This document shows positions 17,500 through 49,647 of a stretch of 64,000 nt of DNA, one piece after another. The notes under the pieces were generated by a model. The model did no database searches, was not told where the DNA came from, and saw nothing but the letters and a program-made list of their open reading frames with translations. This DNA comes from Bugula neritina (taxonomy: Eukaryota > Animalia > Bryozoa): assembly GCA_964035545.1 (NCBI GenBank), contig OZ037769.1, positions 11,748,633 to 11,812,632 on the forward strand, in the 5' to 3' direction. The position numbers and the translations under genes were made by a program. Each line of letters begins with the position of its first letter. Position 1 is the stretch's first letter.

Positions 17500-17571
17500 T
17501 TAAAATAAACTGAAGATTAAAACTAATCCACTAATAATTGCTAGATAAATAGACATCTAAAGAATAAAACA
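17476..17571 (+). repeat. Internal 96-bp copy of the 3' half of the element's own LTR (approx. R-U5)
   Basis: Matches 16306-16401 and the corresponding part of the 3' LTR. Confidence 0.95.
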
Positions 17572-23680: not shown

Positions 23681-25433
23681 TGTTATATTAACTGTCATTC
23701 CAAATAGCACTTCTCAGACGCTATATCTATTTCTTTTAGTAGTTTAGTTCATGTGCAATTTATTTGAATATTGTTGAATTTTATGTATATTTAAAAAAAA
23801 TAGTTTTAAATTGATTTGCATTAGCTTATTAATTTTATATTTTCTATACTTCTTGTTTTGTAAAAAATATTTCATTAATCAGTATTCTTTAACGGTATTA
23901 TAAATGTCAATTATTGATGTATCACCGCATGCTAACTTTTTTTCTGAAAAACTTCTGAGAAATTGGAATATTATTCCAGATAAATTATTTATCAACTACT
24001 ATTTTATGTTTAGTAAGCAATACAACTGTTGTATATACGTACTAATAGGTATATTACTATAATATATGTTGTACCAAAATCAAAAATAGCCTCTAACTGG
24101 GAAGCGTCCATTTGGGTATCGTTTATATTATAGGACTAGTGCGATACATTGATGCGTATATGAATATATAAATAGTTATAGCAATTTACATAACGTCCAT
24201 TGTTTATTATATTGACCACGTTTCGCCAAGCCTCAGTTATGCAGTATTGCTTACATAAACTTTAAATAAAAAAGTGAGCCACTTATAATATCAATATGTT
24301 TACCCTTTATAGTTACAAGTTTTATATGTGTATGAATAGCTGCCAAATGAAACCATTGTATACTTGGGAATTATCAGAGGTATGAAGATTCTAATTACGT
24401 TGATGGAATTGTGCCTTTTGATGATCAATAATAGAAATCCTATTATTAGCAATTGATTTTTTATCAGTTGATGTCTGCTTGAATTAAATAGTCAATACAT
24501 TGTATATACCGCAATTGATTATTCTGATTATACCTATAACCTATTAACGTGTATGCTAGTCTCATAGAGTGTTAAATTCACAGGGACTGTTGAAGATTAC
24601 AAAGACAGTAGAGTTCTATAGAAGCATAAAATATACACTTCTGTATTGAAAGGGTTATATCAAGTTATAACTTACAATAATTATATTAAACTATAAATAT
24701 TTCATGAGGATATATACTGCACTGCAATCTGTTGAATGTAAGTTGTTTTTAATATAATTATGTAGTATAACCAAGCTATACTGTTATTATGATTTGTGTA
24801 TATTATGTATATAGTAAAAAACCTTGTATACTATATAACAGACATGCTGTTGCATTCACTCATCAACACTTACTATAGCAGTAAGTTGCTCTTATAGTAT
24901 TACTGTTATTTTACAGAACCCATATATCCATAATATTCTTGTGCCATTATGCAATGAAGAAGAGAACTCTAAAGACTTCCCACAAACAAATATTGCATAA
25001 CTGAGCCAAGGTAAGCATAGATATTTTATACTCTACAGTCTTATAAAAATTGCAAGTTTTTTATGATTTGCTAATGTATTCTAACAATTTTAATTAGACT
25101 ATAATTTGACATTGAATTTAATTTCTATAGCTTGCCAATAGTTTTACTTTCAAATTACTTAAAAACCTTGAATTTGTAATTTTTTGTGCAACACCTATTA
25201 TACATTGGAAGAGTATAATAACATATAATATATCTAAGTTAAGGTATAAGATATACATGTATGCATAAAATTCTTTTTAATTGATGGATTGGAAGAGGTA
25301 CTAAAATGCTTATATATACTATATATATACTTATATATAAATATATACTTATATATACATATACTATGACAAGCAACTTAAGTTAATTCTTATTCCAATA
25401 TACTCATGCAGGTACAACACAACATGGCAAATA

Positions 25434-28400
25434 ATGGAGGAGTACATTGCTGAATTAGAGTCACTTTTAGCAAAACACTTGGAAGAAGCAGAAACAACGG
25501 GAAACTGGGTTGACTATGTCAAGGTAAATATAGATATTGTAGTTGAATGAAATTGTCGCTATATAGATACTTATTATATATAGTATGATTTGATTCTGAA
25601 AGATATTGCAATTAACTGTATATATGATTAGGACTGAAATTTAGAATTATAACATAGTTATAATTAATAAATATATTGCTTAGACTTTTCTGTAGACATA
25701 AACAAGTAATGTTTAATATGAAAAGCACGCAGCAAAAATAGTTGCAGCAGAATTAATATACTTTTCGTATCTCCATTAGATACAAGTAAAGTATCTCCAT
25801 GCACTCCTACAAGTCTCTAGTATTTGCTTTATAAAAAACAAGACTGCTTTTAAACTAGAACAGCTTAATATCATATTAAACTAAAACCTCTTCAATAATA
25901 AAACTTAACATGCTCTTCAAATTCCAATGTGTGAAATTTTGGTAAATTAGATAACGCAAAATAAAAAACCTCAGTATAAAAACACAGAAGACTAATTGTC
26001 AAACATTGTCTCACTGATGCATGATGCATATAAATAAGTAAATAATATAGTAAAGATTTTTGGGCCATTTAACACATCAAAAACGTAATTCCAATTAATC
26101 TCTATAGCCTTTTATAAAATATTGTATAACTAAGTATTAATAATTATTGATATTTGTGACATTTGAGATAAATTGTCTTCAGTCACATGGAGTTTCATTA
26201 TTGAACTGAGCTGCGCGTGTGCCATATATAGGCAGTTGTTGTAAGGTCATTGCATGTATATATCAAAGTTACCGACTCAAAGGTCTCTTCTGAGTAGAAA
26301 ATTCTGAGTACATTAACAAGCACATTAATTCCTACTCATGAATGAATGAGTGTGAATGTGCATTTTAGAGATGTCAGTGTGGCATGTTACAGAAATTGAC
26401 TCATGCTTTGTTTATATATCAAACTAAGGTATAATCAGAGTTTTCAGTTGCTAATATGTTTTGAAAACATGGCTAAACTGTAGTTGAACTACAGTCAGTT
26501 AACAGCTGTATAGTATAAAAACTTTACAACGCAAGCAGCTCAGTTCTGCAGAAGTATTAGCAATTCGTGTATTGAAAAAAAAGATGGCGACTGTAGAGGT
26601 AGTTGGAAGTTGACATTTGTAGTCTGGGACAGCAAGGTTGCTTTTGCACAGTGATAGTCACTTCAATATTATTTTTAAAAACAAACTTATAATACTTGAA
26701 ATTAAAAAATTGAGCAAGTTACAACAACATTAACACAATACATGTAATAAACATTAGAAAATATGTAATATTGAGTCGAACATACATAGAATGCGGGGAG
26801 CTACTAAATTGAAACAATAATTAAATTATGACAATTCAATAAAACAAAGGGTAAAATATAAATATACATTAGCTGTAACGCAATTAGTGATTTTAGCCGA
26901 TCAAAGTTTTGCGCAAACTATAGTATTTCAAGATTAAAATAATACTAAAGTGACCTGAAATCTATTCCATTTTACTCACTGTTCTGTTATCAACTTGACG
27001 GTGTGAATGTTTGAGGGAGTTTATATTAGAAAACTCAATAAACTTAAGATTTATTATTTACAGCAGTTTATACCTGTAAATATAAGCAGTTTTCTCTCCT
27101 TTGTGATGTAGAGTCATGGAATAGCAAACCACCTGCAAACCATAGATTCACAAAACAGTCAGAGATACCAAAAAGTCTATGAAATAGAAAACAAATGGTA
27201 CAAAGGAAAACATCCACTCACTTTTACAGAACATCAAGAATTGACAAGAGAACATAAACAACAACTGAAAAAATATCGAGAGAATACAATAGTTAACTTT
27301 GATGGCTTGAATAGTGATGTACAGTTGTTGGACATAGACAATGTGTTTAGTGATACTAATTTAGAAATATCTCATCAGTTGTCTAATAATGTATTTGCGA
27401 GCAGTGAGAAGTGTTCCAAAAAATTTGTAGAGTTTTATAGATCAATAATTAGATCAAGTACAGAGTTGCTTAAAAGGTGTCAAGCCGAGCCACCCTGTAA
27501 TTTTGCTGTAGTTGCACTGGGCTCAGTAGCTCGTGGTGAGGCAACTCCGTATTCTGACCTTGAATATGCATTTCTCATTGAAAATGAGGATGAGAAAGAT
27601 TATTTCACTCAACTGGCTGTTGAGACATATTTTAGAATAACTAACCTCAATGAGTCTCCATTGAAAACCTTTAACATTAAAGTTGAAAATCCTCCCGATT
27701 GTCTCAGTGAGAGCTGTCCAGTTGGATATAGGATAGATGGTCTCACACCAAATGCTGGTAACATACCAACAGGAAATGGAGTGACTAGATCTCTTACATT
27801 TACTGTTGAACAAGCAGTAAAATTGTACAAAGAGGAAGTGATGTCACCATCTGGAGAATTAGCAAGTCTTTCGGATCTGCTCATGACATCACAGTTGATC
27901 TACTGTTCTGATGATGGGGCACAGTTACATCCCAGATTTATGGAAGAAATAGCTACATATGAGAAAGTCACAGCCCAAAAACGCCGTAAAATTAAAGAGA
28001 AAAGGTTGATGAGATTTTTTCTAGATTTAAAAAAGTATGATTTCCTACCAAACTTTGAATTCAAAACTGTTATTGGTTTAGATGTGAAAGTAAAAGAAGA
28101 TATTTTCCGTTACATCACTCTGTTAGCTACTAATCTAAACATTGCCCATTGTCTTCAGCTAAACTTTCCATAGAAAGTTTATGAGGCACTTTATCAGTCT
28201 GGGATAATTTCTAAAGAAAGCCTGAGATACCTTCACATTATCTTGGCACTCTCAGTATACATGAGAACTATGGCATACCTCGCTATGGGAACGCAAAAAG
28301 CTGAAATCTTGCTAAGTACCCCCACTGCTGAAATGAAAAGTGGAAAAGTAAGAAGCAAACACTACTATATACCAAGGAAAATATTTGTGACTTTTGGCTC

Positions 28401-30246
28401 AATACTGATTCCGATAAAACAATCTCTCATATCAAGTATACACAAAGGAAGTAAGCTACTGTTCACATTACAGAGAAAAAGTGTAAGTGAATACCTGAAA
28501 TTAGTAATTCCTAGTGATTTGGTGACAGATAAAAATGATTATATGACAATCTGTGAAGTATTGTGTTATGTTCAAGACTCAAAAACAGCCTTTACGTACA
28601 TATCTGCTGGTTCAGGTGCTGATATCAGGACTGTAAGTTATAAACAGTTTGTGAAACTTATACGATTGAAATACAACATAAGCAAATCAGACTATCTAGA
28701 AGAAAAATATTTAGAAATGTGTTGTTTTTTGCTAATTATTAGTGATCATGATAGTAGTGCTATAGACTACTTGGGTGAGTTAATCAGTTATCATACAGAT
28801 AGATTTACCATACTGCATTATAAGAGGATGATAGCTGGCTGTATAAACAAGCTGAGCAAATATGAATCAGCTAGGAATTTTCTCATCCAGATAAAGTCTA
28901 TGCTAGAAGAAGAGTTTATGACAGACAAAACTACATCTCTCACTGAGCATATCCTAAGAAAGGTAGCAGCTTCCACTGAATTGCCAGAGGATATGCTATG
29001 CAAGTTTCAATTCACATCTTCTCTCTACCAATCACTAGGTGAAACAAACTATCACTCAGCCAATCTTGCTGAAGCTGAATTTTACTGGAGGCACTCTCTT
29101 TTTATTCACAGACTATTGTCAGATAAGAACTTTTCAGATAGTGCAAAAGAACAGAAGGTGATGGAATCAAAAATTTTGCGGAGCCTGGGACTTGTGCATA
29201 AACTTAAAAATGACAACAGTGCAGCATTAAAATATTTCACCAAATCAATAAAGATGACAAAAGCTGTTTATGGTGAACATACAAACAACCCTAGAATAGC
29301 TGTCAGCTATGGTGATATCGGAAATGCCCACAAACGACTAGGTAACTATGACACAGCCCTAGAATATTGCGCCAAGTCTATGGAGATGACGAAAGCTGTT
29401 TATGGTGAACATACAAACCACTCTATTATAGCCATCAGCTATGGTAATATTAGTGATGTACACAGAGAACTAGGTAACTATAACACAGCACTAGAATATT
29501 CCACAAAATCAATAGAAATGATGAAAGCTGTTTATGGTGAACATACAAACCACTCTAGGATAGCTATCAGCCATGGTAATATTGGTAGTGTGTACAAAAA
29601 AATAGGTAACTATGACACAGCACTAGAGTATTACACAAAGTCCATGGAGATGCTGAAAGCTGCTTATAGTAAAGGTTCAGCACATCCAGATCTTGTAACT
29701 GTAATCTCTTCCATAATAGACATCTATTTAGAATACAAAAGATATGAAAACTGTTTGCCCCTTTGTTATGCTCCTGTATTGAGTAATTAATGTCTGTCTA
29801 AAGTCCTCAACAGAATATCTGCGGATTACATCAGATCATCAAACTACAGAAGAGCTGCTCAGTTTCTGCAGATTGCTATTTCTAAAGCTGCTGATCATAG
29901 CATGCAGCAGGCTCACAACTACCACCAGATGGGTAGATGTTACATGCTGATGTCATCATACAAGAAGAGTTGGTGTTGGTTGTACTCTGCTCTTTGTCTG
30001 TATCAGTCCTTTTCTAAAACCAGAGAAGTCATTTTGTCTCTTGGTAACGTTCACATGTCCATATCCCATCTACTTCTACTCACTGGTCATGTGACTCAGT
30101 CTCTTGAACATTGTCAAAGATCTCTTGACTACTTTAACAATTTTTCTGGTGTCCAAACAAACCCTGCTGTCAAAAATTTAAAGACACACCTTCTACAACT
30201 CACTGAGTCTTTGCACCTTTTTAAAATCTTAACTAATCACTTCTAA
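25434..30246 (+). pseudogene. Nucleotidyltransferase-TPR gene copy A, join(25434..25523,27112..30246), two in-frame nonsense codons
   Basis: Exon MEEYIAELES...DYVK with a phase-0 GT donor at 25524 and an AG acceptor ending at 27111. LGSVARGEATPYSDLE NTase motif. Stops TAG 28171-28173 (Trp in copy B) and TAA 29788-29790 (Gln in copy B), with no frameshifts. Four repeat linkers at 132-nt spacing (29269, 29401, 29533, 29665). Probable 5'UTR exon at ~24917-25010. Confidence 0.85.
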
Positions 30247-31921
30247 CAGAAATGCTCACCACACACTCTATATTCTACACAAATTTAAAAATAGAATTTG
30301 CCCTTCCTTGGTCGACATATTCGTCTTTTTTGTATCTTGTGTCAACCCTGCATGTGTTGTGATGCTTTTAGCCTGCAAGGTTATGTCATCAGTTCTTTAG
30401 TTGTCGATTCTGGTTTCACAAATACATGTATAGAAATATGGCACTTTCATCGGAATAGTTTTTGGCTCTATTTTTGCATACATGTAGATTTATTATGAAT
30501 AATAATGATTATAATTCTTTAGCTTCCTGTGTTGTTTTACTACTTCTAATACATTAAACTATACCCTGAGAGGGCAGTTTTGGTTCGTCTTACATAATTC
30601 AACTTTGAAACTTGGTTATACTGACTTCTGCATTACTTTGAAAATTATCTATTGGTAAGACTTGGTTTATGTTACACAACTTTATATTATTGTATGCTTT
30701 ACTATATGTTGCGTATCTTACCCACAATGCATTTGGTAATTGTAACCAACTTCCTGACTATATCAAGAGCTAGAACATTTTCTTATTAAAATAGTATTTA
30801 CACCTTTGGGGCTCAGTGTTTGTCTTTTCCAGTTATCATTCATCATTTCAGCAAATTTTATCTTTAACAATATTCTATTTATGATGTATTTTATATCACA
30901 TTTTGTTTGAAATCAATTTTGAAATTCCGAAAGTTTTTTTAGTTTCATAAAATTTATTTTCATGGTAATTTTTATAACGATTTTCTTACAATATTGTGTT
31001 AGTATGTATTTAATAGTATAAATAAAAATATTTTTTATGTTATGCAAACATTATTCATTTCAAAATTAGTTTGAATTTAAATCTGGCTCTTCATAGCAGA
31101 TGTGTCCCAAAACATGATATTTAAACATTTTCTGGACACAAGTAACAGGTTAAAACATATCTGAACAGTGTGAAGATACAAGCAACAAAAATTACCTATA
31201 TATTATTGTAATGTTTTTAATTGCCGTTATATTTTCTTCTACTGTTATTTTTTGATTAAATTGAAAATTTAATTTAATCAACCGCCTCTCCGGTGTTGCA
31301 ATAGCTTTTTGGCAGCTTTCCAAAAAATTATTGTGTAACGAAAACTATTTGTGAAAGCGTTCACGATAGCTATTTACTGACAGTTTTTGGTAGATGAGAG
31401 AGTGTAGCTCAGTTTTCCTCCTGTTAAAGATGCAGGCAATCTACACTTAATTGTCAAAATAATTGTTACAGTAAAGTATGAGTACAAGTAAAGTACAGTA
31501 AAGTACGAGTAGAAGTATGAGTACAAGTATAATGAGTATGAGTCTAAGTAGAAATGAAGTCTAACTTAGAAAATATACTGTTGGCAATAGACAAAAATAG
31601 AGTTGTGACCTGCATATGTGTCCTCCATTCATTCACCCTTCATTAAGTGAACCACAATAGGCCCTACATAGGCATCCGTGCCAAGCAGCATCCGTGCTGA
31701 CGCAGCAACAATTATCAGCTGATACCGTAACAACTATCGGCTGTCACAATTATTATATTGTATATATACATACGCTGCCAACCACAGAAACTTTTTTTGT
31801 ACTATTCTGATATCAACATTATTTGCTCCAAAAAAGCTATACAAAGAAAAATTAATAAATTAAGTTGATAAAATCAAAAATTTTTACAATAACTTAAGGT
31901 ACATGTTTTGATTCACATTAA

Positions 31922-32080
31922 ATTGCACTGATTATTCATATAATAATATACCCAAAGAGTATGCAGTACATACATTACACTGGTTATTCATATAATAATA
32001 TACCCAAAGAGTATACAGTACATAAATTACACTGGTTATTAATGTAATAATATAGCCAGAGAGTGTACAATATTTACATC
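31922..32080. repeat. ~52-bp tandem repeat (3 units) in the 3' flank of copy A
   Basis: attacactggttattcatataataatatacccaaagagtatacagtacata units. The paralogous units lie at ~50797-50852 and ~60466-60520. Confidence 0.8.
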
Positions 32081-32160
32081 ACATGAATGTAAGCATATAC
32101 AAACCACATATTTCATGTACATTCATAGAAAAGATACTCTATAAATTTACCCATGTTATA

Positions 32161-34864
<2,704 letters not shown>

Positions 34865-36273
34865 CATTATGAAGCTATAACTATGACACAATACGTATAC
34901 ACAGTATTTGTTGTTATAAAATGAATAAGCTAATCAAATTTGTGATTATCCAAACCTGAAAAAACTTTAACGAAAAATTCATGTGAATAATAAACGCTAT
35001 TTGTATGGTGCATTGAAAAGCTACTGATGGAAGAAAACTGTGTACATGCATGTGTTATATCTTGCTAGGAATCTAAGGCTATATGCTATAAGAGTAGTGC
35101 TATAAAACAAATAGTATACAAATATGTGTATATAAGGAGGTAGTTCCACATGCATAAGCTTGCACTGTTCATTTTGGCTTCCTGCCAACAAGTCTTATTT
35201 ATATAATATTATTTTCTATGCAAACTTTAAACAAACAGTTGAATATATTATATCATTTTATTCACCTTTTGTAGCTACAGTTTTTATAACTGCATGTGTG
35301 AAAATAGTTTAAAAGGCAATTTCATTTTCAAATCTTCACATGCATGAAAATTATATAATTAGGTTCATATAATTGTGTTCTTTGATAACCAATGAAATAG
35401 AAATACTAGTGAATAACAACTTGAGTTGCTATTTGCTTATGTCTGCTTGATTTAATATCTCAATACTTTCTATATACTCTATTATGCATTGTATATTAGA
35501 CTCTGTTATTTAACCCATTAACACAAGTGTTATTCTCACAGAATGTTGAATACATAGAGACTGTTGAAGGCTACAGAGTCAGTGGACTTCTAAATAGATA
35601 TAAGTTATACATTTCTGTATTGAAAGATCAGTATTAAATCAAGTGATAATTGTATTAAGCTACTACTTTATGAGGATATACTACATTTTAATCTTTTGAA
35701 TGGTAATCTAGCTGCTATCATTATGATATGTGTATGTATGCACTGCCTTGAAGATGCTTGTGATATGTATACTATGCATGACTATTAGTTATAGTTAGAT
35801 CTATATATTTTATTACAGAGCTATTGTTTTACAGAGTTCGTAACTATATGGTAACATTGTACTTATTTACAATGAAGAAGAGAAAGCTAAAAGCTTCTCG
35901 AAACACAACGAAACACAAAGCATAACTGCTTTAAAGGTAAGGATATAATATGGTTTATATACTATAAGGCATTTAGTTATAGTATAATTATGTATAGTAG
36001 AATATTTTATATAATATATTCAAAGCCAACATAAAAATATGCTTGATGGTGTTGTGATTTCAGAATGTATGTTTATGGCTATGAATATATACGTATTATT
36101 ATTATTAGCGTTTTAATATGATATAATTTTGTGAGGTCGATTGGAACATTTTTAAAAGTTGATCAATTACTTTTTAATTTTGTTGTTGTGAAGATTGAGG
36201 AACATTTTTGCAACGTTGAAGTTCAGTATAGACCTGCACAACAATAAAAAAATGCACATTTGCATGAGAGCTC

Positions 36274-36313
<40 letters not shown>

Positions 36314-36451
36314 ATATTTTAATACTATAATTAGATATATTGTTCTATTAATTGAATTTATATATTGGATAGTGTACCATGACAATGCTTTATATTATTA
36401 AAAACAAACTTTATCATTCCAATACTCAGGTACAACACAACATGGTGAATC

Positions 36452-39400
36452 ATGGAGGATTACATTGCTGAATTAGAGTCACTTTTAGCAAAACACTTGG
36501 AAGAAGCAGAAACAACAGAAAACTGGGTTGACTATGTCAAGGTAAATATAGATATTGTAGTTGAATGAAATTGTCGTTATATAGATACTTATTATATATA
36601 GTATGATTTGGTTCTGAAAGATATTGCAATTAACTGTATAATTATGACTGAAATTTAGAATTATAACATAGTTATAATTAATAAATATATTACTTAGACT
36701 TTTCTGTAGACATAAACAAGTTTTGTGTAATATGAAATAGTTGCAGCAGAATTAATACCTTTCATAGCTCCATTAGATACAAGTAAAGTATCTCCATGCA
36801 CTCCTACAAGTCTCTAGTATTTGTTTTATAAAAGACAAAACTGCTTTTAAATTAGAGCAGCCTAATTTTATCACTAAACTAAAACATATTCCGTAAAAAA
36901 ACTAAACATACTCTTCAAATTCTTTTGTGTGAAATTTTGGTAAACTAAATAACACAAAATAAGAAACCTCAGTACAAAAACACAGAAGATTAATTCTCGA
37001 ACATTGTCTTACTGATGCCATGATGCATATAAATAAGTAGATATTATAGTAAAGATTTTTGGGGCCATTTAACACATCAAAAAAGTAATTCCATAGAATC
37101 TCTATAGCCTTTTATAAAATATTGTGAAACTAAGTATTAATAATAATTGATATTTGTGACATTTGTGATAAATTGTCTTCAGTCACATGGAGTTTCATTA
37201 TTGAACTGAGCTGCGCGCATGCCATATATAGGCAGTTGTTGTAAGGTCATTTCATGTATATATCAGAGTTACCGACTCAGAGGTCTCTTCTGAGTAGAAA
37301 ATTCTGAGTACATTAACAAGCACATTAATTCACACTCATGAGTGAATGAATGTAAATGTGAATTTTAGAGATGTCAGTGTGGGATATACATCAAACTAGG
37401 GTATGATTAGAGTTTTTCAGTTGCTAACATGTTTTGAAAACATGGTTAAACTGTAGTTGAGATACAGTCAGTTAACAGCAGTAGTATAAAAACTTTAAAA
37501 TGCAAGCAGCTCAGTCCTGCAGATGTATTAGCAATTCGTATATTGAAAAAAGATGGTGACTGTAGGAGTTGTTGGAAATTGACACTTGCATGTAGTGTGA
37601 GAGAGCAAGGTTGCTGTTGCACAGTGATAGTCACTTCAATATCAATTTCAAAAACAAATTTATAATACTTGAAATTAAAAAATTGAGCAAGTTACAACAA
37701 CATTAACATAATACATGTAATAAACATTAGAAAATACGAAATATACTGAGTCGAACATATATAAAAGGAGGAGAGCTACCAAATTTAAACAATAATTGAA
37801 TAATGATAATTCAGCACAACAAAGGGTAAAATATAAATTTACAGTAGCTGTAACGAAATTGGTGATCTCAGCCTATCAAAGTTTTGCGCAAATTATAGTA
37901 ATTCAAGATTAAAATAACACTTGTAATGGATTTTGCATGTACTTGTTTCCGGTTGCCGAGATCGACATTTCGGGCTACCGAAAGCCCGAAGTGCCGAAAT
38001 TCGGTGTTTCGGACCTCCGATCTCGGCAACAAAGGGAAAGCACTGTATCTTGTTGTATATAAAAGCCAGCGAGCTCCAGTGTAGTTCAGTCTACTACTGG
38101 AGCTCACTGGCAGAGGACCTTCACTATATTATATCATTCGATTAAATAAAGATTTCTTCACCTTTACAATACATCTTGTTCTCTCTAACAAAGAGTATGT
38201 TCAGGCACTAGTTCTATTCAACCCACAAAAATATCACATTGGTGGCAGCGGTGGGATTTTGAATAACTAGTTCCCAAAGGGGAACGAGATGGCTCCGCCA
38301 GGGGAAACAGCCCCTGGGGCAACGGAGACGGAGACACCAACCCTCACGGTAGAGGCTTTGGTTGCAGCCCTCCAGGGATTGCGGGAGCCAAGTCAGGCGC
38401 CACCTGGTGACAGGTACCGCCTCAAGCTCCCGAATTCCGGAGGGGAGGAGGATGTGGAGCAGTTCATCCGCGAGTTCGAAGATGTGGCCACCATCGCTGA
38501 ATAGCCAGCCCCGGTGCGCATACTTCAACTCCGGTCCTGTTTGACAGGCCAGGCGAAGAGCTTTGCTCTTAGGCCTGATGAAGCCCATATCCTGCGGGCC
38601 CTCAGGGCCCGATTCGGCCGGACATCCGAAGAGGCTGTGGATCGCCTACAGGCACTGAGGCGAAACCGCAAGACGACGTTAGAAGAGCATGCCAACACGG
38701 TGGAACGGTTGGCCCAGGCTGCTTACAGCCACGCCACAGGTACAGAGAGGAAGCGCCTGGTGTACAACGCATTCTTTAAAAGCGTCAACGACTCTGGCCT
38801 GCAGCGCTACTGGCTGGCCGCCAAAGTTCGCACCTTGAAAGAAGCCCTGGAGATGGGCAAGTCATATTTCCAGGTGGAAGGGCTCCAAAAGAGGAGCTTC
38901 ACCGCACACCAGGTAGCCGAGGGGAACCCAGAGGACGCCACACCCGTAACTCCACAAGTGTCGGCAGCAACGACTCCGTCGCCAGAACAGGCGCAGCTCG
39001 CCGTGTTAGTAGACATGATGAAGGGTCTACAGGCTACGGTAACCGAACTACAACAAAACCAGGCGGATAGGCGGGCTCCCTGAATATGGGACGACCCTGT
39101 CCGCCCCTCGCAGCTTACCTGCTGCGGATGTGGAGCGTCTGGGCATGTGAAGAGACATTGCCCCAAAGGTAGCTTGCCTTTAAACAACCAAGGCTCACAG
39201 TAACTTCCGCCGACCGTGGGCCCCCAGCCAACCCCATTCGGGGGAGGGGTCAGGGAATGACCAAGAAGACCCCTACAGCGTCTGACGAGATGGGATGGCA
39301 GAGACCTCGGAGATCTCGGAAACCAAAAGGTTTACCCGATCCTCCGGTCATGCCACTCAACACCCGGATGGAGTCAGAAGACGTAGGATGGCAGGCACCT

Positions 39401-42400
39401 CGGAGATCTCGGAGACCGCAAGGTCTACCCGATCCTCCGGCCTGGCCACTCCATAACCGGTTCGCGGGGTTGCCCGAGGAAGTCAAGGAGGAGGACTCAG
39501 CTTACTCGCAAGAGTACCCCAAGCTGCCCTCCCGACCTCAGAAAACCCCCGTTGTCTCTAAGACAACGAGGAGGCCCGCTGTGCGGACCCAAGTTGTGTC
39601 TCTCCCAGAGACTAACCGCTCCGGGAGCACCCAACCGTATGGAAGCAGCTACTTCCTACCCGGAAAAATTTCGGGTAAAGCTGCCACATTCCTACTGGAC
39701 ACTGTGTGCACTACAAATCTGCTGAGTAGGTGTCTCTTTGACACTCTTGGTGCCCGAGAGCGGGCGAGCCTCGAGCCGTATGAAGGTGCGCGGACGGATC
39801 ATGCATTCCCTTCTACGGCATCCTTTCACTGCCTGGACGCATCCGTGATCAAGCAATTTACGGGACGTTCATAGTCAGCCAGCTGAAGGAGGACGCCATC
39901 CTGGGAATGCCGTTTCTGGAGAAACACCAGTGTCACATGGATTTCCAGAAGTCAGTGGTGGTAATGGCTGAGAAGGAACTTGTCTGTGTTGACAAGTTCG
40001 CCAGGCCCTTGGTGGGCGGAGTCCAGGTAGTGCGGGACTGCACAGTTCCGGGAAGATCCCAGGCGACTCTTCGCTGCAGAGTCAACTGCAAGGAGATCGC
40101 TGACCTGGGGGTGGTTGAGGGAACGCACGGAGCGATCCGACTAGCAAACAGCCTGAATCGGCTAGACTGTCGGCAAGAGCTCCTCGTGCAGTGTATCAAC
40201 CCCTTCACGGAACCTGTCCGATTATCGGCCGGAGCGCTGGTGGGGAAGTACCACTCCATCCAGGACGCGGATGTGGGTCCGGCACTGGAAACAGTGGCCG
40301 ATACCCAGGGAAACCCCCCTCGCACCAGCCAAAGAGCAGTCCCGGAGCATATGGCTGACCTGTACGATGGAGCGTGCGGCAACTGTACGAGTAGTACTGA
40401 ACGCCAAGTACTGGCTCAACTACTCGCGGAGTACAGTGATGTCTTCAGTCGTGGTGATGAAGACATGGGGCTGACTAAGGTTATCTCTCACAAGATACCC
40501 CTGGCAGCCGGCACCACTCCCATCAGGCAGCCCACCCGGCGTCTAGGCCCGGAGAAAGAGAAGGAGATGAGCCGACAGGTGCAAGATCTTCTCGACCGGG
40601 ATCTGATTGAGCCTGCCCACGGTGCGTGGAGCTCTCCAGTAGTCCTGGTCAAGAAGAAGGACGGTAGCTGGAGGTTCTGTGTGGACTACCGCAGACTCAA
40701 CAGCGTTACCATCTAAGACGCCTACCCTCTCCCACGGATAGATGAGTCTCTGGATGCCCTCGCGGGTAGCAAGTACTTCAGTACTTTGGATCTGCTTAGC
40801 GGGTACTGGCAAGTGCCCCTCAGTCCTGATGCCCAGGGCAAAGCAGCATTTATTACTCGCGACGGGCTCTGGAAGTGGAAAGTACTGCCATTTGGACTAA
40901 CGTCCGCCCCGGCAACTTTCCAACGGCTCATGGAGCAGGTCCTCAGTGGATTACACTGGAAGACCTTCCTCATCTATCTGGACGACGTCATTGTCATCTC
41001 CCCAAACTTTTCGACTCATGTCAGTCGTCTGCGGGAGGTCTTTGACTGTCTCCGGGCAGCTGGACTGAAGCTGAAGCCCTCCAAATGTGCACTCCTGCAG
41101 CCGGAAGTCACGTACCTTGGCCATGTGGTTGGCCGGGATGGGGTCGCTACTGACCCAGAGAAGGTACAGGCTGTGAAGGAGTGGGCTGTCCCCCGTGACC
41201 TCCCTGAGTTGCGCGCATTCCTGGGCCTAGTAGGGTACTACCGGCAGTACATACCTGGCTTCGCAGGAGTGGCTCAGCCGTTAAACCGGCTGACCGCAAA
41301 GGGGGTCCAGTGGCAGTGGACGCAGGAGGAGCAGCAAGCATTTGACCACCTCAAGCAACAGCTAATGGAGGCGCCAATTTTGGCGTATCCTGATCCAGCC
41401 AAGGAGTACATCCTGGACACCGACGCCAGCGACCACAGCGTGGGAGCTGTCCTGTCTCAAGTCCAGGGTGGAAGTGAGGTGGTCATGGCTTACTACAGCA
41501 AGACTCTCGCGGCCGCCGAGAAGAACTACTGCACCACTAGGAAGGAACTCCTAGCAGTAGTCAAGGCGGTCAAGCACTTTTGGCCATATCTGTATGGGAG
41601 AACGTTCCGTTTGCGAACAGACCATGCATCACTGATATGGTTGTGTAAACGTGCAGAGCCCTCGAGCCAGGTAGCTTGTTGGCTAGAGATTCTTGCTGAG
41701 TTTTCTTACCGGATAGAGCACCGTGCTGGCCGGAAGCACGGGAACGCCGACGGCATGAGCCGCCGGCCGGTAGAGGACTGTAAGCAATGCCTGCACATTG
41801 AAAAGCGGGACGGGGGACCCGCTCGCCTTGACGTGGAAACAGAGTTAGAGGAAGGCGCCGTCTACCGGTGGGAGCACGGCCATCTTCGGCCCAAAACCTA
41901 CTCAGACGACGTCCAGGCGCTCCACGCCAACCCCACTCTGTACCAGAATGTCAAGGAGCTGTGCCGACTCCAGGAGACGCTACCCGGCGCGGTAGCAGAC
42001 ATTTTCCAGGCCAAGAAGGAGGGCGGACGACCTAGCGAGGAACAGCAGCGGCAGGGAGACGTTGAGTTCCAACTTCTCTGTCGTCGCTGGGATGCCCTCA
42101 AGGTCAGTCCTGATGGCCTCCTGATGATAGCGTTAGCAGCAGACAACCGTCAACAGGAGAGGGACCGCGTCTTCTGCCCACGCGCCCTCCGACGGGAACT
42201 GATCTGGGACACCCATAAGCAGGCTCATTCTGGAGTCAGTCGGGTCATCAGGTGTCTGCGGCTGCGTTGGTATTGACCCAGAATGACTCGGGACGTACGA
42301 CTGCGGGTACGGCAATGCGAGGTCTGCTAAGCTAGAAAGCATGGCCGCCCCACGGAAACCACTGGTTGACGCCGGCTGTGCGCTGGTCGACCATGGCGGT

Positions 42401-45400
42401 AGACCTCGTCGGGCCTATGCTGTTATCCGCCAGAGGGAACACCTGGATACTAGTGCTCATGGACCACTTTACCCGGTGGGCAGATGCTCTGGCTATTCCA
42501 GACGCAACAGCCCCCACGGTGGCCCGGATCCTGGACCAACATGTGTTCTGTTACCTCGGTTTACCCGAGCAGATACATACGGACCAGGGTGCCCAGTTCC
42601 AGTCCCAGCTCATGGGAGACCTCTGCCGGATATGGGGGGTGAACCAGAGTCGGACCACCCCATATCACCCGCAAGGGAACGGAGTCGTCGAACGGAATAG
42701 CAAGATGTTGGGTGACGCCCTCAGGAGCCTGCTCCTTGGTCGAGGTCAGGAAGAATGGGACGTGGTGCTGCCGCAAATCATGCGGGCTTACCGCAGCACA
42801 CCACACAGGAGACCCCAAAATTCCTGATGCTAGGCCGAAAGACGCGGGTTCCGGAACACCTAACATACCATGTTCCTGCCCCCGAGTTACCGGTACACGA
42901 ATACGTGGAGGGTCTGATAGACATCATGAGCAAAGCTCATGATGCACTGCATACCCAACAGTAGCAGACCCGCACAGAGGACTCAGAGGAGCCCCCGTTG
43001 TACCAGGTGGGAGACTGGGTCTGGATGGTGAGCTACCATAGGCGACGCAAACAGTGGGCTAAACTTCAGCCCAAGTTCGTCGGTCCCTACTGCGTAGTGG
43101 AGGTGCTGCCCAACCACACGTACCGTGTGGAGCGCTCTGGACAGGTCTCGCCTGAAGCCGTACCATGCCAGCCCGGACGCAGTGGGTCAGGCCCCACCCC
43201 TCTTGGAGCACGTGAACAGGCCGCTCTACTGGAACGGCAACAGACAGGGGCAACAATTACCACCATCACAGGCCTCGGAGGTACCGCCCCAACTGGAAAG
43301 AGGCGTCCTCGCCCATAACACTGATGACAACAGGACCCCTCCTGTTACAGTAGTCGAAGAATCGCAAGCCCTGACAGAACCCATTCAACTTGAGAGAAGC
43401 CAGAGAGACAGAAGACCCCCCAGATACTTAGCAGATTATGCAGTAGGACGCCTTGAAGTACCCCCTCGTAGTCTTAGCTCTCATATTTCCATATACTATC
43501 CTACCTTGAGTGACGATTCCCTCAAAGACTCACAAAAATTTTACCAACAGATGAAAAACTCAGACCGAAATTTGGTGGGCACGCGATTACCTGAGTTATC
43601 ATTTCAAAATTTGATGGGAATTCCCACGGGTCACGTGGCCATCGCCGCTGCAGGTAATAATTTTAAAACACGGGGCTCGGCCATTATTACTACAGCCATC
43701 GCACAAGCAACACGCAATTTAGAAATTAAAATTCAAAATTTGAATTCTGATTTTAAACTACAATCGAACTCTAACTCAAACATGGACTCCACACTCGTCG
43801 AATCTACTAACATCACCACAGGTATTCCTTTACGGTTACAACCTCCACAAACGGAGTCTAACCAAACTAATGTTGATTGGAGTTTGTTAGATTCTCTAGA
43901 ATCTGACTTATTAGAGCCAGATACCGAGATGGATCTGGAAGGTGACCCTGTCCACGATTTCTTGTTGGACCAAGACGTGGGTTTGGTCACACTTTCAGAC
44001 TCATCTCGGCCCCCAGTATGTAGCTTAGTACCGTATAAGAGTATGCCGAATTCGGCGATAGAGAGATCGGCTTGTCACAGCCTCTTCTATCTGTTGTAGG
44101 AAATAGTATGGTGGGGTCGAGTTGTACCAACTCCCCCCTTCCCTGGCCCCTGTTCCGGCTCTCAGCAGCCAACAGGGCGCCACTCCACCGACAGGGATGC
44201 CTCCCACCACCGTCAGTGTCCCTGGGTCTAACCCGGTCGAGCTCCAACTCTCGGCCGGGAAAGAACTGGGCATACTGCTCGGTGGGGAACCCACGGAGAG
44301 AGATGATGACTCCCAGATACTGGCCTTGCCTCGGGCCTTGGTCGCCCGCCAGTACTGGATCTCCCGAGGGACCAACTTAAAAATTGGTCAGACGTGCGGC
44401 GAGCCGGGCAACCGCATCTGCCAGCAGTGTCGGAGGAAGTTTTCCTCCACACGGCGGCTGCGAGTTCACGCCCCGCAGCATTACATTAACGTATTCTGCT
44501 CGTGTGGCGAATTCTCTTATCAGCGCAATTACGTGCTGAGGCACCAGCGCATCTCGCGCTGCCACACGGGCCACACGTTTGCAGTGGACCAGGCCAGTTT
44601 CCTCGAATTCCGGGACCTGGTGCTGCCCCACGTTGCGGACCCCCGCAAACGGGCTACCCTTGCCCAAGAGTTTCCCGCATGCCGCCCAATCAGGGAGGTA
44701 GAGGAGGAGCCCGTCGCGACGCCTCAACCAGCGGCCACCCAGCCACTTCGGGTCGTGCTGGCACGGGTCGAAGGAGGCAGGTCCGCGTCCCCGGGCCTGA
44801 GCCAGCGACCCTCGGCGACGGGAAGAAGAGGACAGCCCCAGCGTAGCGTCACCAGCCACGCTGCATCCCTGCCACTGGAGGAGGAGGTCCGGTCCCTGCG
44901 CCGGCGCCTGAGATGATACGAGGACGAGTTAGGAGAGCTGAGACGACGAGTGAGCCGTCTGGAGCGGGCGCGCGATACCGACCAACAATAGGGCCGTTCT
45001 TTATATTGACATTGGTGGAGGGAGCATGTTTATTTTATTGCTTCGCATGATATTACTTTTGTTTATTGTTTTGCATGATATTACTTTTGTTTATTACTTA
45101 CATGATATTAAAGCTTATGTGTCGCATGCTGTTGATTGTTTTTTTACCTGACATATCATTTCTTGTGTTGTCCCCAACGTTGCTTCATTTTGTTTTTTTT
45201 GTTTTGTTGTTGCTAAAATCACATTTCCTCTTATCGGAAAGTATGCTTTCTGATGGGGGGTGTGTGTAATGGATTTGGCATGTACTTGTTTCCGGTTGCC
45301 GAGATCGGCATTTCGGCTTTCCAAAATGCCGAAATACCGAAAATCGGCATTTCGGGCTACCGAAAGCCCGAAGTGCCGAAATTCGGTGTTTCGGACTGCT

Positions 45401-48400
45401 GAAATGCCGAAATTCGGCGTTTTGGACGCCTGAAATGCCGAAGTTCGGCATTTCGGACCTCCGATCTCGGCAACAAAGGGAAAGCACTGTATCTTGTTGT
45501 ATATAAAAGCCAGCGAGCTCCAGTGTAGTTCAGTCTACTACTGGAGCTCACTGGCAGAGGACGTTCACTATATTATATCATTCGATTAAATAAAGATTTC
45601 TTCACCTTTACAATACATCTTGTTCTCTCTAACAAAGAGTATGTTCAGGCACTAGTTCTATTCAACCCACAAAAATATCACACACTAAAGTGAGCTGAAA
45701 TCTTTTTTATTTTACTCACTGTTCTGTTATCAACTTGACACTGTTAATGTTTAAGGAAGTTTATATTAGAAAACTCATTAGTTAAACTTAAGATTTATCT
45801 TTTACAGCAGTTTATAAGTGTAAATATAAGCAGTTGTCTCTCCTTTGTGATGTAGAGTCATGGAATAGCAAACCACCTGCAAACCGTAGATTCACAAAAC
45901 AGTCAGAGATACGAACAAGTCTATGAAATAGAAAACAAATGGTACAAAGGAAAACATCCGCTCACTTTTACAGAACATCAAGAATTTACAAGACAACATA
46001 AACAACAACTGAAAAAATATCGAGAGAATACAATCATTAACTTTGACAGTTTGAATAGTGATGTACAGTTGTTGGACATAGACAATGTGTTTAGTGATGC
46101 TAATTTAGAAATATCTCATCAGTTGTCTAATAATGTATTTGCGAGCAGTGAGAAGTGTTCCAAAAAATTTTTAGAGTTTTCTAGATCAATAATTAGATCA
46201 AGTACAGAGTTGCTTAAAAGGTGTCAAGTAGAGCCACCCTGTAATTTTGCTGTAGTTGCACTGGGCTCAGCAGCTCGTAGTGAGGCAACTCCGTATTCTG
46301 ACCTTGAATATGCATTTCTCATTGAAAATGAGGATGAGAAAGATTATTTCACTCAACTGGCTGTTGAGACATATTTTAGAATAACGAACCTCAATGAGTC
46401 TCCATTGAAAACCTTTGAAATTAAACTTAAAAACTCTCCTGACTGTCTCAGTGAGAGCTATTCAGTAGGATATAGAATAGATGGTCTTGCACCAAATGCT
46501 GGTAACATACCAACAGGAAATGGATTGGGTGAATGTCTCACTTTCACAGTTGAACAAGCAGTGAAACTGTACAAAGAGAAAGTGATGTCACCATCTGAAA
46601 AACTAGCAAGTCTTTCAGATCTGCTCATTACATCACAGTTGATATACTGTTCTGATGATGGAGCACAGTTACATGGCAGGTTTATGGAAGAAATAGCTAC
46701 ATATGAAAAATTTACAGCTCAGAATGATTATCAAATCAAACGGAAGAGGTTGGAAAGAGTTTCTCTAGATTTACAGAAATATGATTTTCTCCCAGAATTT
46801 GAATTTAAAACTGCTGGTGAAGATGTGAAGGTAAAAGAAGACATTTTCCGTTATATCACTCTTTTGGCTACTAATCTAAACATTGGCCTGTGTTTTCTAC
46901 TGAACTTTCCATGGAAGGTGTATGAGGCACTTTGCCAGTCAGGGATAATTTCTAAAGATAGCCTGAGATACCTTCACATTATCTTGGGACTCTCAATATA
47001 CATGAGAACTATGGCATACACCACTATGGGAACTCAAAAAGCTGAAATCCTGCTAAGTACTCCAACAGCTGAAATAAAAAATGAAAATAAAAAAGTTAAA
47101 CATTACTATGTGCCTAGACAGATATTTGTGATGTTTGGCTCAATACTAATTCCAATAAAACAATCCCTCGTATTAAGTATGCGCAACGGACATCGGCTAC
47201 TGTCAGCATTAAATGAGAAGAGTGTGAGTGAATACTTAAACTCAGTGATTCCCAGTGATTTGGTGACAGATAAAAATAATTATATGACAACATGTGAAGT
47301 ATTGTGTTACGTTGAAGACTTAAACACAGCCCTAAAGTGCATATCTACCGGTTCAGGTGTTGATATTAGAAGTGTAGGATACGAAGAGTTTGTGAAACAT
47401 ATACGAGCAAAATATAACACAAACAAGTCAGACTATCTAGAGCAAAAGTATCTAAAAATGTGCTGCTATTTGCTGATTACCAGTGAGTGTGATAATAGTG
47501 CCATTGAGTACTTGAGCTGGTTAATTAGTTATGAGAAAAGTTGCCATGGTGTAATGCTTTATAAAAAACTGATAGCTGACTGTATGAATAGGTTGAGCAG
47601 ATATAAATCTGCTAGGAGTATTCTCATTCAAATAAAGTTTGCACTAGAAGAGCTCATGATTATAGAGACAGACAAATCTCTTACTGAGTACATACTAAGA
47701 AAAGTAGAAGTTTCTACTAACTTGCCCGAATACCTGCTAAATCTGTTTCGATTCACATCAGATCTCTTGCACTCACTGGGTGTAACTAATACTCACTTAT
47801 CAAATCTAGCTGAAGCTGAATATTACCTGATGCAGTCTCTGGATATGCACAGAGTATTATGTGACAAAATGTTTTTCCATGATGCAAGTGGACACAAACT
47901 AGTTGAATCAAGGATTTTAAACAGCTTAGGAATTGTACATGAAAACAGGAGTAAAAACAGTAGAGCCTTAGAGTGTTTCACTAAATCTCTAGAACTGATA
48001 AAATCAGTTTATGGTGAACATGCGAACCACTTTACCATAGCTATTAGCTATGGTAAAATTGGTGATGTACACTCTGAGTTAAGTAATTATGACACAGCAC
48101 TAAAATTTTACACTATGTCAATGGAGATGATGAAGGCAGTTTATGGTGAACATACAAACCATTCTACTATGGCTGTCACCTATAACAATATTGGTGATGT
48201 ACAAAAGTACTTAGGTAACTACAACAGAGCACTAGAATACTATACCAAGTCAACAGAGATGATGAAAGCTGTCTATGGTGAAAATGCAAACCACTCTAGT
48301 ATAGCAATCAGCTATAATAACATTGGTGATGTACAAAAACAATTAGGCAACTATGATGTAGCTCTAGAATTTTACATCAAATCAATGAAGAAGAAAAAAG

Positions 48401-49647
48401 ATCTTTATGGTGAGCATACAAAACACCCCAGTATAGCTATTAGCTATAGTAAAGCTGGTGATGTACATACCAAACTTGGCAATTATGATGCAGCGCTTGA
48501 GCATTACACAGAATCAATGGAGATGTTGAAGGCTGTTCATGGTGAACATACAAACCACTCTAGTATAGCAATCAGCTATGGTAATATTGGTAATGTACAC
48601 AAACAACTAGATAACTATGACACGGCACTAGAATACTACACCAAGTCTTTGGCAATGGAAAAAGCTGTTTATGGTGACCATGAAAGTCACTCTAGTATAG
48701 CTATTAGCTATAATAACATTGGTGATGTACACAAAAAACTAGGTAACTATGACACAGCCCTAAAATACTATACAGAGTCAATTAACATGAAAAAAACTGT
48801 GTATGGACAACATACCAACCATCCCAGTATAGCTATCTGCTATGGTAATATTGGCAACGTACATAAACAACTAGCTAACTATGACACAGCACTAGGCTAT
48901 TATGCTATGTCAATGAAGATGATGAAAGCTGTTTATGGTGAACATACAGTTCACCCTGACATAGCTACAAGCTATGGTAGAATTGGTGCCGTACACAAAC
49001 ATCTATGTAACTATGACACAGCACTAGAACATTACACCAAGTCAATTGAAATGCTAAAAGCTGTCTATGGTGAAAGTTCGGCACATCCTAATCTTGCAGA
49101 TGCAATCTCTTCTATAATAGACATTTATCTAGAATTCAACAGATATGAAGACTGTCTGTTCCTTTGCGATACTCCTGTAGTGAGTAATCAATGTCTGTCC
49201 AAAGTCCTCAACAAAATATCAGCAAATTGCATCAGATCATCAAACTACAGAAGAGCTGCTCAGTTTCTGCAGATTGCTATTTCTAAAGCTGCTGATCATA
49301 GCATGCAGCAGGCTGACAACTACCACCAGATGGGTAAATGTTACATGCTCATGTCATCATACCAGAAGAGTTGGTGTTGGTTGTACTCTGCTCTCTGTCT
49401 GTATCAGTCCTTTCCGAAAACCAGAGAGGTCATTTTTTTTCTTGGTAACGTTCACATGTCCATATCTCATCTACATCTACACACTGGTCATGTGATTCAG
49501 TCCCTTGAACATTGTCAAAGATCTCTTGACTACTTTAACAATTTTTCTGGTGTCAAAACAAACTCTGATGTCAAAAATTTAAAGACACACCTTCTACAAC
49601 TCACTGAGTCTTTGCATCTTGTTAAAATCTTAACAAATCACTTCTAA
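36452..49647 (+). CDS. Nucleotidyltransferase-TPR protein copy B, join(36452..36541,45856..49647), ~1293 aa: Pol-beta-fold NTase (GlnD/GlnE/DUF294-like), helical region, array of 44-aa TPR repeats
   Basis: Same exon structure as copy A with a phase-0 intron, and the frame is open from 45856. LGSAARSEATPYSDLE (hGS-x10-DhE) plus GYRIDG. Nine repeat linkers at 132-nt spacing (48010-49066), consensus YGEHTNHSSIAISYGNIGDVHKxLGNYDTALEYYTKSMEMMKAV. Confidence 0.9.
38289..39203 (+). pseudogene. gag: gag of element 2 with CCHC knuckle; stops at 38502 and 39081
   Basis: Homologous to the gag of element 3 (RYRLKLPNSGGEEDVEQFIREF). CCGCGASGHVKRHC knuckle. Ends LNNQGSQ*. Confidence 0.85.
39179..39212 (+). 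promoter_or_regulatory. Programmed -1 ribosomal frameshift site (T TTA AAC plus downstream stem)
   Basis: Heptamer TTTAAAC (39179-39185) in X_XXY_YYZ phase of gag. The -1 frame is open into the pol ORF at 39257. A stem ggctcac/gtgggcc starts 6 nt downstream. Confidence 0.7.
39257..43200 (+). pseudogene. pol: pol of element 2 (PR-RT-RNaseH-IN) with frameshifts and stops
   Basis: LLDTVCT (degenerate protease), WRFCVDYRRLN, YLDD, DTDAS, TDHASL, HTDQGAQF, VERN. Stops at 40714, 42274, 42328 and 42962, plus frameshifts. Confidence 0.9.
44108..44991 (+). CDS. Accessory 3' ORF of element 2: two C2H2-like zinc fingers and a C-terminal coiled coil (one internal stop at 44914)
   Basis: CQQCRRKFSSTRRLRVHAPQH and FCSCGEFSYQRNYVLRH...CH, then LEEEVRSLRRRLR*YEDELGELRRRVSRLE heptads. 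Homologous to the ORF in element 3. Confidence 0.65.

Follow-up and report, generated by a model that had tools for sequence, protein, structure and literature searches.

AMPylases built on the adenylyltransferase fold (GS-ATase and DrrA) have been reviewed as bacterial enzymes, the animal AMPylases discussed being FICD and SelO (PMC8097203, PMC12409994). The characterised members of this fold class, GlnE and DrrA, AMPylate protein tyrosines (PMC8097203), and no animal member was described in the literature that we searched. An architecture in which a nucleotidyltransferase (NTase) domain of the DUF294 type precedes tetratricopeptide repeats (TPRs) has been described once, in the 50-member NEX2 family of Neochlamydia, whose proteins combine an F-box, sometimes an OTU domain, DUF294 and TPRs and are taken as effectors (PMC4209131). 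In animals, FICD is a TPR-bearing AMPylase (PMC12409994), while arrays of near-identical TPR units are known from fungal NOD-like receptors (NLRs) (Dyrka et al. 2014, PMC4986451). Here, we describe a pair of genes, copy A and copy B, from the bryozoan Bugula neritina, each encoding a DUF294-type NTase followed by a TPR array. The pair lies in a 64,000-nucleotide stretch (C5:11748633-11812632 of the 216-Mb, 321-contig assembly), hereafter the window, and had been picked out in a sequence-only reading as a possible recognition system.

Fold and class of the enzyme domain

Both copies contain the motifs GSxARxEATPYSDLE, GYRIDG and VKVKEDIFRY, and both match Pfam DUF294 (PF03445) above its cut-off of 21 (33.8 bits for copy B, 38.2 bits for copy A). 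Weak Pfam matches to SidM_N (18.8 and 23.9 bits, under the cut-off of 27) and NTP_transf_2 were returned for both copies, the NCBIfam GlnD models scored 16-18 bits against cut-offs of 630-800, and no Mab-21 or OAS Pfam match was found in either copy. Across 42 homologs, down to 24 % identity, the residues G137, S138, P146, S148, D149, E151, D209, D305, K327, R332 and R384 are invariant (copy B motifs and domains are numbered here by the residues of exon 2). Among them are those of the Pol-beta signature, G137 S138 ... D149-x-E151, which is encoded at 46264-46308 and lies on strands 131-136 and 149-156 of the structural model, and D209 of GYRIDG (46480-46482), the candidate third acidic residue, which lies in a short strand of the model.

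The AlphaFold2 model of residues 1-560 of copy B exon 2, built with the 42-homolog alignment as input, reached a predicted local distance difference test score (pLDDT) of 90.5 and a predicted template modelling score (pTM) of 0.92. Foldseek returned four matches in the PDB at E<=0.001, namely DrrA (9.6e-8), the N-domain of GlnE and the C-domain of GlnE (two chains), the E values for the DrrA and GlnE matches running from 1e-7 to 6e-6. A comparison by VIA, which is independent of Foldseek, gave DrrA a Z of 26.5 (320 of 339 residues, model residues 1-451), followed by the GlnE N-domain (Z 19.3), the GlnE C-domain (Z 18.7) and an N-terminal fragment of DrrA (Z 13.5). The structure matches also include ANT(4') and ANT(9). 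The cGAS/DncV-like nucleotidyltransferases (CD-NTases) DncV and CdnC reached a Foldseek E of only ~0.4, as against 1e-7 for DrrA, and neither cGAS, OAS nor poly(A) polymerase was among the matches listed (50 from Foldseek, 50 from VIA); a cGAS/OAS-like enzyme was rejected on the basis of this fold. DrrA likewise ranked first in a profile search of PDB sequences with the 42-homolog alignment (E 3.5e-4), in which GSxAxxxATxYSDL was aligned, and D149/E151 line up with the catalytic D110/D112 of DrrA (PMC8097203).

Judged by its predicted structure, then, the enzyme is a Pol-beta NTase of the GlnD/GlnE/DUF294 type, in the DrrA/GlnE fold class. The sequence-only reading had named this class in preference to cGAS, OAS or poly(A) polymerase, and the assignment held when the fold was compared. 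DrrA/SidM of Legionella pneumophila (PDB 6yx5, 3nku) is the best match among solved structures by both structure and sequence, sharing G-x11-D-x-[DE] within GSxAxxxATxYSDL and a HEPN-like helical domain thereafter. [quoted passage not shown] The GlnE/GlnD/DUF294 proteins share the fold and the DUF294 match, but the bryozoan proteins lack the PII-binding, ACT, HD, CBS and cNMP domains and carry one NTase per protein, compared with two in GlnE.

Behind the NTase core, residues ~290-464 matched HEPN toxins (VIA, Z 8.1-8.4). The Rx4-6H RNase motif is not present in the helical domain of copy B, and an active HEPN RNase was rejected on this account; the GlnD/GlnE/DUF294_C group is likewise devoid of the motif according to a survey of HEPN domains (PMC3710099). 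The stretch from enzyme to array consists of helical hairpins in the models. No NACHT or NB-ARC Pfam match was found, none of 17 paralogs has a Walker A motif, and PADLOC returned a generic TPR model and weak NTase matches, nothing further. An NLR or STAND (signal transduction ATPase with numerous domains) receptor was rejected, there being no NTPase domain between enzyme and repeats, and the NLR-type likeness put forward in the sequence-only reading fails on the same missing centre. With no signal peptide or membrane segment predicted, the encoded enzymes are predicted to be soluble and cytoplasmic.

A variable TPR array in a multigene family

The arrays match Pfam TPR_12 with 251 bits in copy B and 114 bits in copy A, and in both the units recur every 44 residues (132 nt) exactly. 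Tandem Repeats Finder detected 3.4 copies in copy A (29222-29667, 81 % matches, no indels) and 8.2 copies in copy B (47996-49074, 73 % matches). By unit counting, genes of the close subfamily have 4-9 units (four in copy A, nine in copy B), and those of other subfamilies up to ~35. When 88 core units were compared, 27 of the 44 unit positions proved at least 90 % conserved, while positions 24, 27, 30, 31, 34, 37 and 38 showed an entropy of 1.7-2.5 bits and positions 5, 9 and 12 varied more conservatively. Position 1 of the TPR_1 profile falls on unit position 26, so the variable sites correspond to canonical TPR positions -1, 2, 5, 6, 9, 12 and 13. For comparison, variability across TPRs is highest at positions 2, 5, 9, 12, 13, 33 and 34, and HOP binds its ligands via 2, 5, 6, 9, 12 and 13 (PMC1261162). 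By this correspondence, the variable sites are the predicted concave, ligand-contacting groove positions of the TPR. A second model, of residues 640-1263, has a pLDDT of 85.7 and shows helical hairpins up to the C-terminus; all seven variable sites lie on helix A with a spacing of i, i+3/4, i+7, and in structure the array is most like TPR superhelices such as that of OGT. At the variable sites, pN exceeds the repeat-wide mean of pS by a factor of 1.2-2.4 and is about equal to the local pS; diversifying selection at groove positions may be at work. The proposal that the array is a variable recognition surface thus found support in the placing of the variation in the groove.

Units have a mean amino-acid identity of 0.62 in copy B and of 0.65-0.83 in the other paralogs, and a mean nucleotide identity of 0.72 and 0.80-0.92, respectively. 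Units from different genes are as alike as units from the same gene (nucleotide identity 0.85 vs 0.86), and the nearest unit was found in another gene for 70 of the 88 units. One paralog, L043 (C7, 13.560 Mb), contains a perfect three-unit (132-residue) duplication in its array, which by its sequence is the product of a very recent unequal exchange; its open frame ends inside the array, and it may be a truncated gene. The arrays resemble those of the fungal NLRs in near-identical units, unit-number variation and exchange between paralogs, and in the placing of variable residues on the concave face, as in KLC-type TPRs (PMC4986451). They differ in that the NACHT/NB-ARC of the fungal proteins is absent, that unit identity (62 % in copy B, 65-83 % in the other paralogs) is lower than the fungal criterion of 85 %, and that repeat number was seen to vary between paralogs, not alleles. 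FICD/HYPE and OGT, in turn, join TPRs to an enzyme that modifies protein hydroxyls, and the OGT TPR is among the best matches of the array; their catalytic folds (Fic, GT-B) are nevertheless unrelated, and both are single-copy conserved genes whose TPRs lie at the N-terminus and are not hypervariable.

When the genome was searched with the first 440 residues of exon 2, at least 65 places matched, in tandem clusters of which a few members are broken. From sequence, we predict a family of at least 60 genes in this bryozoan, in line with the earlier view that the pair does not represent a single housekeeping ortholog. Approximately 20 matches have 80-86 % identity (C5 11.77-11.82, 15.09-15.12 and 15.90-16.16 Mb; C7 13.56-13.59 Mb), ~25 have an identity of around 40 % (most of them on C6; the open frames reach 2267 residues) and ~20 one of around 30 % (C5 6.35-6.43 Mb, C2 32.47-32.55 Mb). 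A third copy, L044, lies just past the end of the window and is open over 1042 codons, and B. neritina EB796_018089 has a 96 % identical match among the family members elsewhere in the genome. By Pfam, every subfamily has NTase and TPR alone, with no adaptor or death-fold domain in any bryozoan subfamily. The motifs GS...SDxE and G[YF]xIDG were kept in 37 of the 37 own-genome loci examined, and the median ratio of nonsynonymous to synonymous substitution rates (omega) among 16 close paralogs was 0.16 in the NTase core, 0.25 in the HEPN-like domain, 0.32 in the N-terminal helices and 0.42 in the linker. On these substitution patterns, the enzyme part is evidently under purifying selection.

The trees of nt 1-870 and nt 870-2100 of exon 2 disagree: copies A and B are sisters (100/99) in the 5' part of exon 2 only, and other pairs change partners. 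One such case is C5_16.004, which pairs with C5_16.021 in nt 1-870 and is near-identical to C5_15.902 in nt 870-2100 (L034, L037, L045). Synonymous divergence shifts several-fold along the gene, and together with the discordant trees this indicates that paralogs exchange sequence. The changes in topology suggest that paralogs separated by hundreds of kilobases undergo gene conversion or recombination.

An exhaustive profile-free search for relatives returned 1018 cluster representatives at E<=0.001, and a word-indexed search with profile A2 returned four matches. The best named protein matches are from Bugula neritina and Watersipora subatra, and the named relatives come from Watersipora, the octocoral Dendronephthya, the amphioxus Branchiostoma and the annelid Owenia, bearing out the expectation that similar architectures would be present in other invertebrates. 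The distribution is patchy across animal phyla, with large lineage-specific expansions. The amphioxus proteins P0062, P0073, P0076 and P0134 chain two to four NTase-TPR modules and may be true giants or merged tandem genes, while Owenia fusiformis P0143 has the order OTU-DUF294-TPR, a combination found in ten chlamydial NEX2 members. The DUF294 domain as such is already labelled automatically by databases.

Outside animals, the closest clusters in the ESM Atlas consist of bacterial DUF294+DUF294_C proteins of ~400 residues, along with a ciliate cluster. A core-motif scan of one genome per prokaryotic species yielded 35 loci, almost all of them from obligate intracellular bacteria; the bait was the animal core motif, which makes the scan blind to bacterial relatives with other motif variants. 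The bacteria that carry these loci are Rickettsia, Tisiphia and Megaera, Holosporaceae, Amoebophilaceae, and Parachlamydiaceae and Rhabdochlamydiaceae, and a 1.06-Mb Cytophagales endosymbiont genome has eight DUF294-TPR copies. The bacterial genes encode proteins of 750 to 2500 residues with the motif GSMALQQMTPYSDLE, in which Pfam finds DUF294/SidM_N and then TPR_12/TPR_10 arrays (L060, L065, L071, L076, L079, L082), and over the core they are up to 40 % identical to animal members. On these sequence matches, the animal DUF294-TPR architecture is present in obligate intracellular bacteria beyond the published NEX2 family, which is new here. These NEX2-like genes share with the bryozoan genes the order of domains, a nearly identical motif and expansion within genomes. 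They differ in having 200-1300 residues ahead of the NTase, where the bryozoan proteins start 135 residues before the motif, and in being genes without introns for presumed host-acting effectors, whereas the bryozoan genes have a spliceosomal intron. NEX2 proteins moreover have an N-terminal F-box or OTU domain, neither of which is found in the bryozoan genes, which lie among LTR (long terminal repeat) retrotransposons on a 17.7-Mb contig. Symbiont contamination was rejected on account of the introns, the LTR elements and the length of this contig.

In a maximum-likelihood tree of the module, computed with no outgroup, a long branch leads to a fully supported clade of the bryozoan genes, within which three Bugula-Watersipora subfamily pairs indicate that the subfamilies are older than the split of those genera. 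Bacterial sequences of different phyla are intermixed. The DUF294-TPR genes of Amoebophilaceae, Rickettsiaceae and Holosporaceae fall in one fully supported clade (100/99; L057-L091), a grouping which suggests that the module can pass from one intracellular bacterium to another, unrelated one. A single branch with weak support (69/88) parts the animal from the bacterial sequences, and without an outgroup the tree is compatible with transfer between animals and bacteria in either direction. The bacterial origin contemplated in the sequence-only reading is thus too simple: the nearest bacterial relatives do share the whole NTase-TPR architecture, but they live inside eukaryotic cells, and the tree is neutral on the donor.

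Gene models and surrounding repeats

A tblastn search with the long open reading frame (ORF) detected two copies in the window and no more, each in frame 1 on the plus strand (Table 1). Copy B is a two-exon gene of 1293 codons in all; an open frame of 1263 codons in DNA of 33-36 % G+C is far beyond chance. Its exon 2 opens directly after the AG acceptor, the acceptor TAG itself closing the frame upstream, and GTAAAT stands directly 3' of exon 1 in both copies. Several comparisons bear on this model: of 15 close paralogs, 8 also have exon 1 with its donor, 1.3-2.3 kb upstream; NCBI-annotated Watersipora homologs have their exon junction at the identical residue; and exon 2 begins at a shared [AS]H[GA]L motif in all four subfamilies of the genome, with a common acceptor position. 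Copy A keeps a single frame with no frameshift but is interrupted by two in-frame stops, TAG at 28171-28173 and TAA at 29788-29790.

What the sequence-only reading had seen of the pair was borne out, with one correction. Its outer limits coincide with the ATG of copy A exon 1 (25434) and the last base of the copy B stop codon (49647); the two paralogs and their motifs are where it placed them, as the motifs, Pfam DUF294 and TPR_12 and the 44-residue period agree; nearly all coding sequence does lie in one exon of more than 3 kb; and one copy is dead while the other is open. The long ORF of copy B likewise stands, but the gene is not confined to 46051-49647, since its first exon lies 9.3 kb upstream, beyond an LTR retrotransposon.

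Table 1. Features of copy A and copy B, by position in the window
Feature	Position	Strand	Details
Duplicated segment with copy A	25409-31213	+	blastn against copy B region: 82-88 % identity, colinear
Copy A exon 1, coding part	25434-25523	+	30 codons; donor GT at 25524; found by tblastn with N-terminus of B. neritina homolog P0014
Copy A exon 2, pseudogene	27112-30246	+	Natural stop 30244-30246
Copy A TPR array	29224-29751	+	4 units of 44 residues
Copy B duplicated segment, 5' part (exon 1 and intron start)	36427-37921	+	88 % identical to 25409-26946
Copy B exon 1, coding part	36452-36541	+	90 nt, 30 codons; donor GT at 36542; located by P0014 N-terminus
Copy B intron	36542-45855	+	9.3 kb; acceptor AG 45854-45855
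Ty3/gypsy-type LTR retrotransposon in copy B intron	37922-45683	+	7.76 kb; same orientation as gene; missing from copy A
Copy B duplicated segment, 3' part	45684-50627	+	Self-comparison with copy A
Copy B exon 2	45856-49647	+	3792 nt; 1263 codons and stop (49645-49647), open throughout
Copy B nucleotidyltransferase core	46231-46725	+	Residues 126-290; invariant columns, Pfam DUF294, DrrA alignment, model strands
Copy B HEPN-like (KNTase_C-type) helical domain	46726-47220	+	Residues 291-455; structural matches; invariant D305, K327, R332, R384
Copy B helical linker	47221-47964	+	Residues 456-703; degenerate TPR-like hairpins; TPR matches for residues 472-560
Copy B TPR array	47965-49152	+	9 units of exactly 44 residues; Pfam, unit counting, repeat finder, model
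Copy B C-terminal helical hairpins, solenoid cap	49153-49644	+	Model m13ca6d96a3ce: helix pairs to end, pLDDT 85.7

Ahead of the start codon, a conserved stretch, CAG followed by GTACAACAYAAC and then ATG RTG AAT CAT G, was observed at 25409-25436 and 36427-36454 and in eight paralogs (those named for it are L033, L035, L038, L039, L041, L043 and L044). It constitutes an upstream ORF of 9 codons, out of frame and overlapping the main ATG, and it resembles a splice acceptor exactly where the homology between copies A and B starts. There may accordingly be an untranslated upstream exon or leader ahead of exon 1.

The DNA of the window is AT-rich (27-36 % G+C), its G+C-rich islands are retroelements, and the gene pair sits in a transposon-rich stretch. 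The retrotransposon in the copy B intron has LTRs at 37922-38238 and 45265-45682 that are ~95 % identical over 270 nt and contain internal repeats of 31-39 nt. It carries reverse transcriptase/RNase H and integrase ORFs, with pol split over several ORFs, and its G+C content is 50-58 %, compared with ~30-36 % in the flanks. Further retroelements lie at 13550-19895 (with a reverse transcriptase-RNase H-integrase ORF at 17571-19895) and, on the minus strand, at 51408-52256 (an RVT_2 fragment of copia type), and an integrase zinc finger is encoded by an ORF at 55459-59609. An (ACC)n microsatellite of 85 copies, 98 % pure, occupies 33363-33617 within a G+C-rich island between copies A and B.

Proposed mechanism, alternatives and significance

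We consider the most likely mechanism, with moderate confidence, to be that of a protein nucleotidylyltransferase (an AMPylase or UMPylase) steered by its TPR groove. The groove of the array would capture a protein or peptide partner, and the N-terminal enzyme would then move a nucleotide monophosphate to a hydroxyl, probably that of a tyrosine, on the partner itself or on a co-recruited protein. Catalysis, the kind of substrate, the part played by the groove and an immune role are all matters that we infer: the substrate class is proposed by analogy with GlnE and DrrA, and partner binding from the pattern of variation and by analogy with the TPR-transferases OGT and FICD. Diversity in the family would arise as genes are duplicated in tandem, units are gained and lost, paralogs exchange sequence and substitutions gather on groove-facing residues. 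Such a pattern would imply many and changing partners and would suit proteins in conflict with a microbe, a symbiont or non-self tissue. The expanded size of the family, the turnover of its copies and its link to intracellular bacteria point in the same direction, towards a possible role in immunity, symbiont control or allorecognition.

Several observations weigh against this reading, whether for the family or for copy B. Pfam DUF294_C, which matches the amphioxus homologs, gave no match in copy B at E<=0.1, and pN/pS at the hypervariable sites is ~1.0 when taken against the local pS of the same codons. Bacterial DUF294 proteins, for their part, are to our knowledge uncharacterised. Copy B has its closest counterpart on the JGI contig L049 (87 % protein identity, nine units too), in which the intron is present, so that the contig is genomic and carries no evidence on expression. 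Of the nonsynonymous changes between the two arrays, 3 of 21 fall at groove positions, which is no enrichment, and where their scaffolds differ, the consensus was lost 11 times by copy B and three times by L049. Copy B departs from the scaffold at 4.5 of 27 positions per unit, the highest value of the subfamily (0.2-3.2 in other paralogs, 2.7 in copy A), and it may, on this pattern, be drifting. A run search found no sequencing run recorded as RNA that contains the copy B stretch; three runs guessed to be RNA match ~5 % of the sampled copy B words and were not counted as evidence.

It is possible, though we do not favour it, that both genes of the window are non-functional relics, copy A dead by its nonsense codons and copy B open but unexpressed or drifting. 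The scaffold losses of copy B and its missing RNA record fit such an outcome, as do the 7.8-kb LTR element in its intron and the wealth of retroelements around it. An intronic LTR element alone does not silence a gene, however, and copy B retains its 1263-codon frame, all catalytic residues, its splice sites and exon 1. Furthermore, the comparison of copy B with L049 gives an omega of 0.31 for the whole and of 0.30 for the array, and values this low indicate that the open frame has been under constraint. The window itself contributes a pseudogene and an open copy that is divergent and stands at the family's edge.

For the family as a whole, a sensor-effector switch would explain expansion and groove variation equally well. 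Here, the TPR array would keep the enzyme inactive until a foreign ligand binds, and the freed enzyme would modify a host protein (stopping trafficking or translation, or killing the cell) or make a soluble nucleotide signal. The fungal NLR arrays vary in the same pattern (PMC4986451), and the isolated N-terminal domain of DrrA is cytotoxic in eukaryotic cells (PMC8097203), which makes a cell-autonomous 'kill switch' conceivable. We nonetheless think such a switch somewhat unlikely, as the oligomerising NTPase switch domain is absent and no bryozoan subfamily provides an adaptor or death-fold domain. The nucleotide signal, which had been suggested from the sequence alone, gains no support from the fold class, since GlnE/DrrA-type enzymes are not known for cyclic or linear nucleotide signals and the CD-NTases rank far behind in the structural search.

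The steered nucleotidylyltransferase may be extended into a wider picture, in which bryozoans would possess a diversifying germline family of recognition-coupled AMPylases, with other forms in amphioxus, annelids and octocorals. The groove would capture a foreign or non-self protein and the DrrA-like enzyme would tag or disable it, as an arm of immunity or allorecognition without an NLR-type switch. Through evolutionary exchange it would be tied to intracellular bacteria and their DUF294-TPR effectors, the module having passed by capture from one side to the other. Taken in its entirety, this picture is speculative and we hold it to be unlikely.

That the genes are instead ordinary cellular regulators, AMPylases or UMPylases with housekeeping or developmental targets whose expansion reflects subfunctionalisation and whose TPR variation is neutral drift on exposed positions, would suit the ratio near 1 at the variable sites against local pS, an omega well under 1 everywhere else and three or more subfamilies older than the Bugula-Watersipora split, but it is improbable given that variation is limited to one face of helix A with a nearly invariant convex face, the opposite of plain surface drift (PMC1261162), and given the changes in unit number, the perfect recent three-unit duplication, the pseudogenes, the mosaic trees and the patchy phyletic distribution with its large lineage-specific expansions.

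What the window alone yields, a pseudogene and a divergent open copy, is smaller than what the family would offer. The architecture shared with Rickettsiales, Holosporales, Chlamydiae and Amoebophilaceae ties these animal genes to DrrA-like effectors and makes the question of who copied whom testable. If the proposed mechanism is true, the family would provide a tractable system for how repeat arrays steer a protein-modifying enzyme, and at least 60 animal genes with this fold, with all catalytic residues preserved by purifying selection and a variable array attached, would constitute a third class of animal AMPylase.

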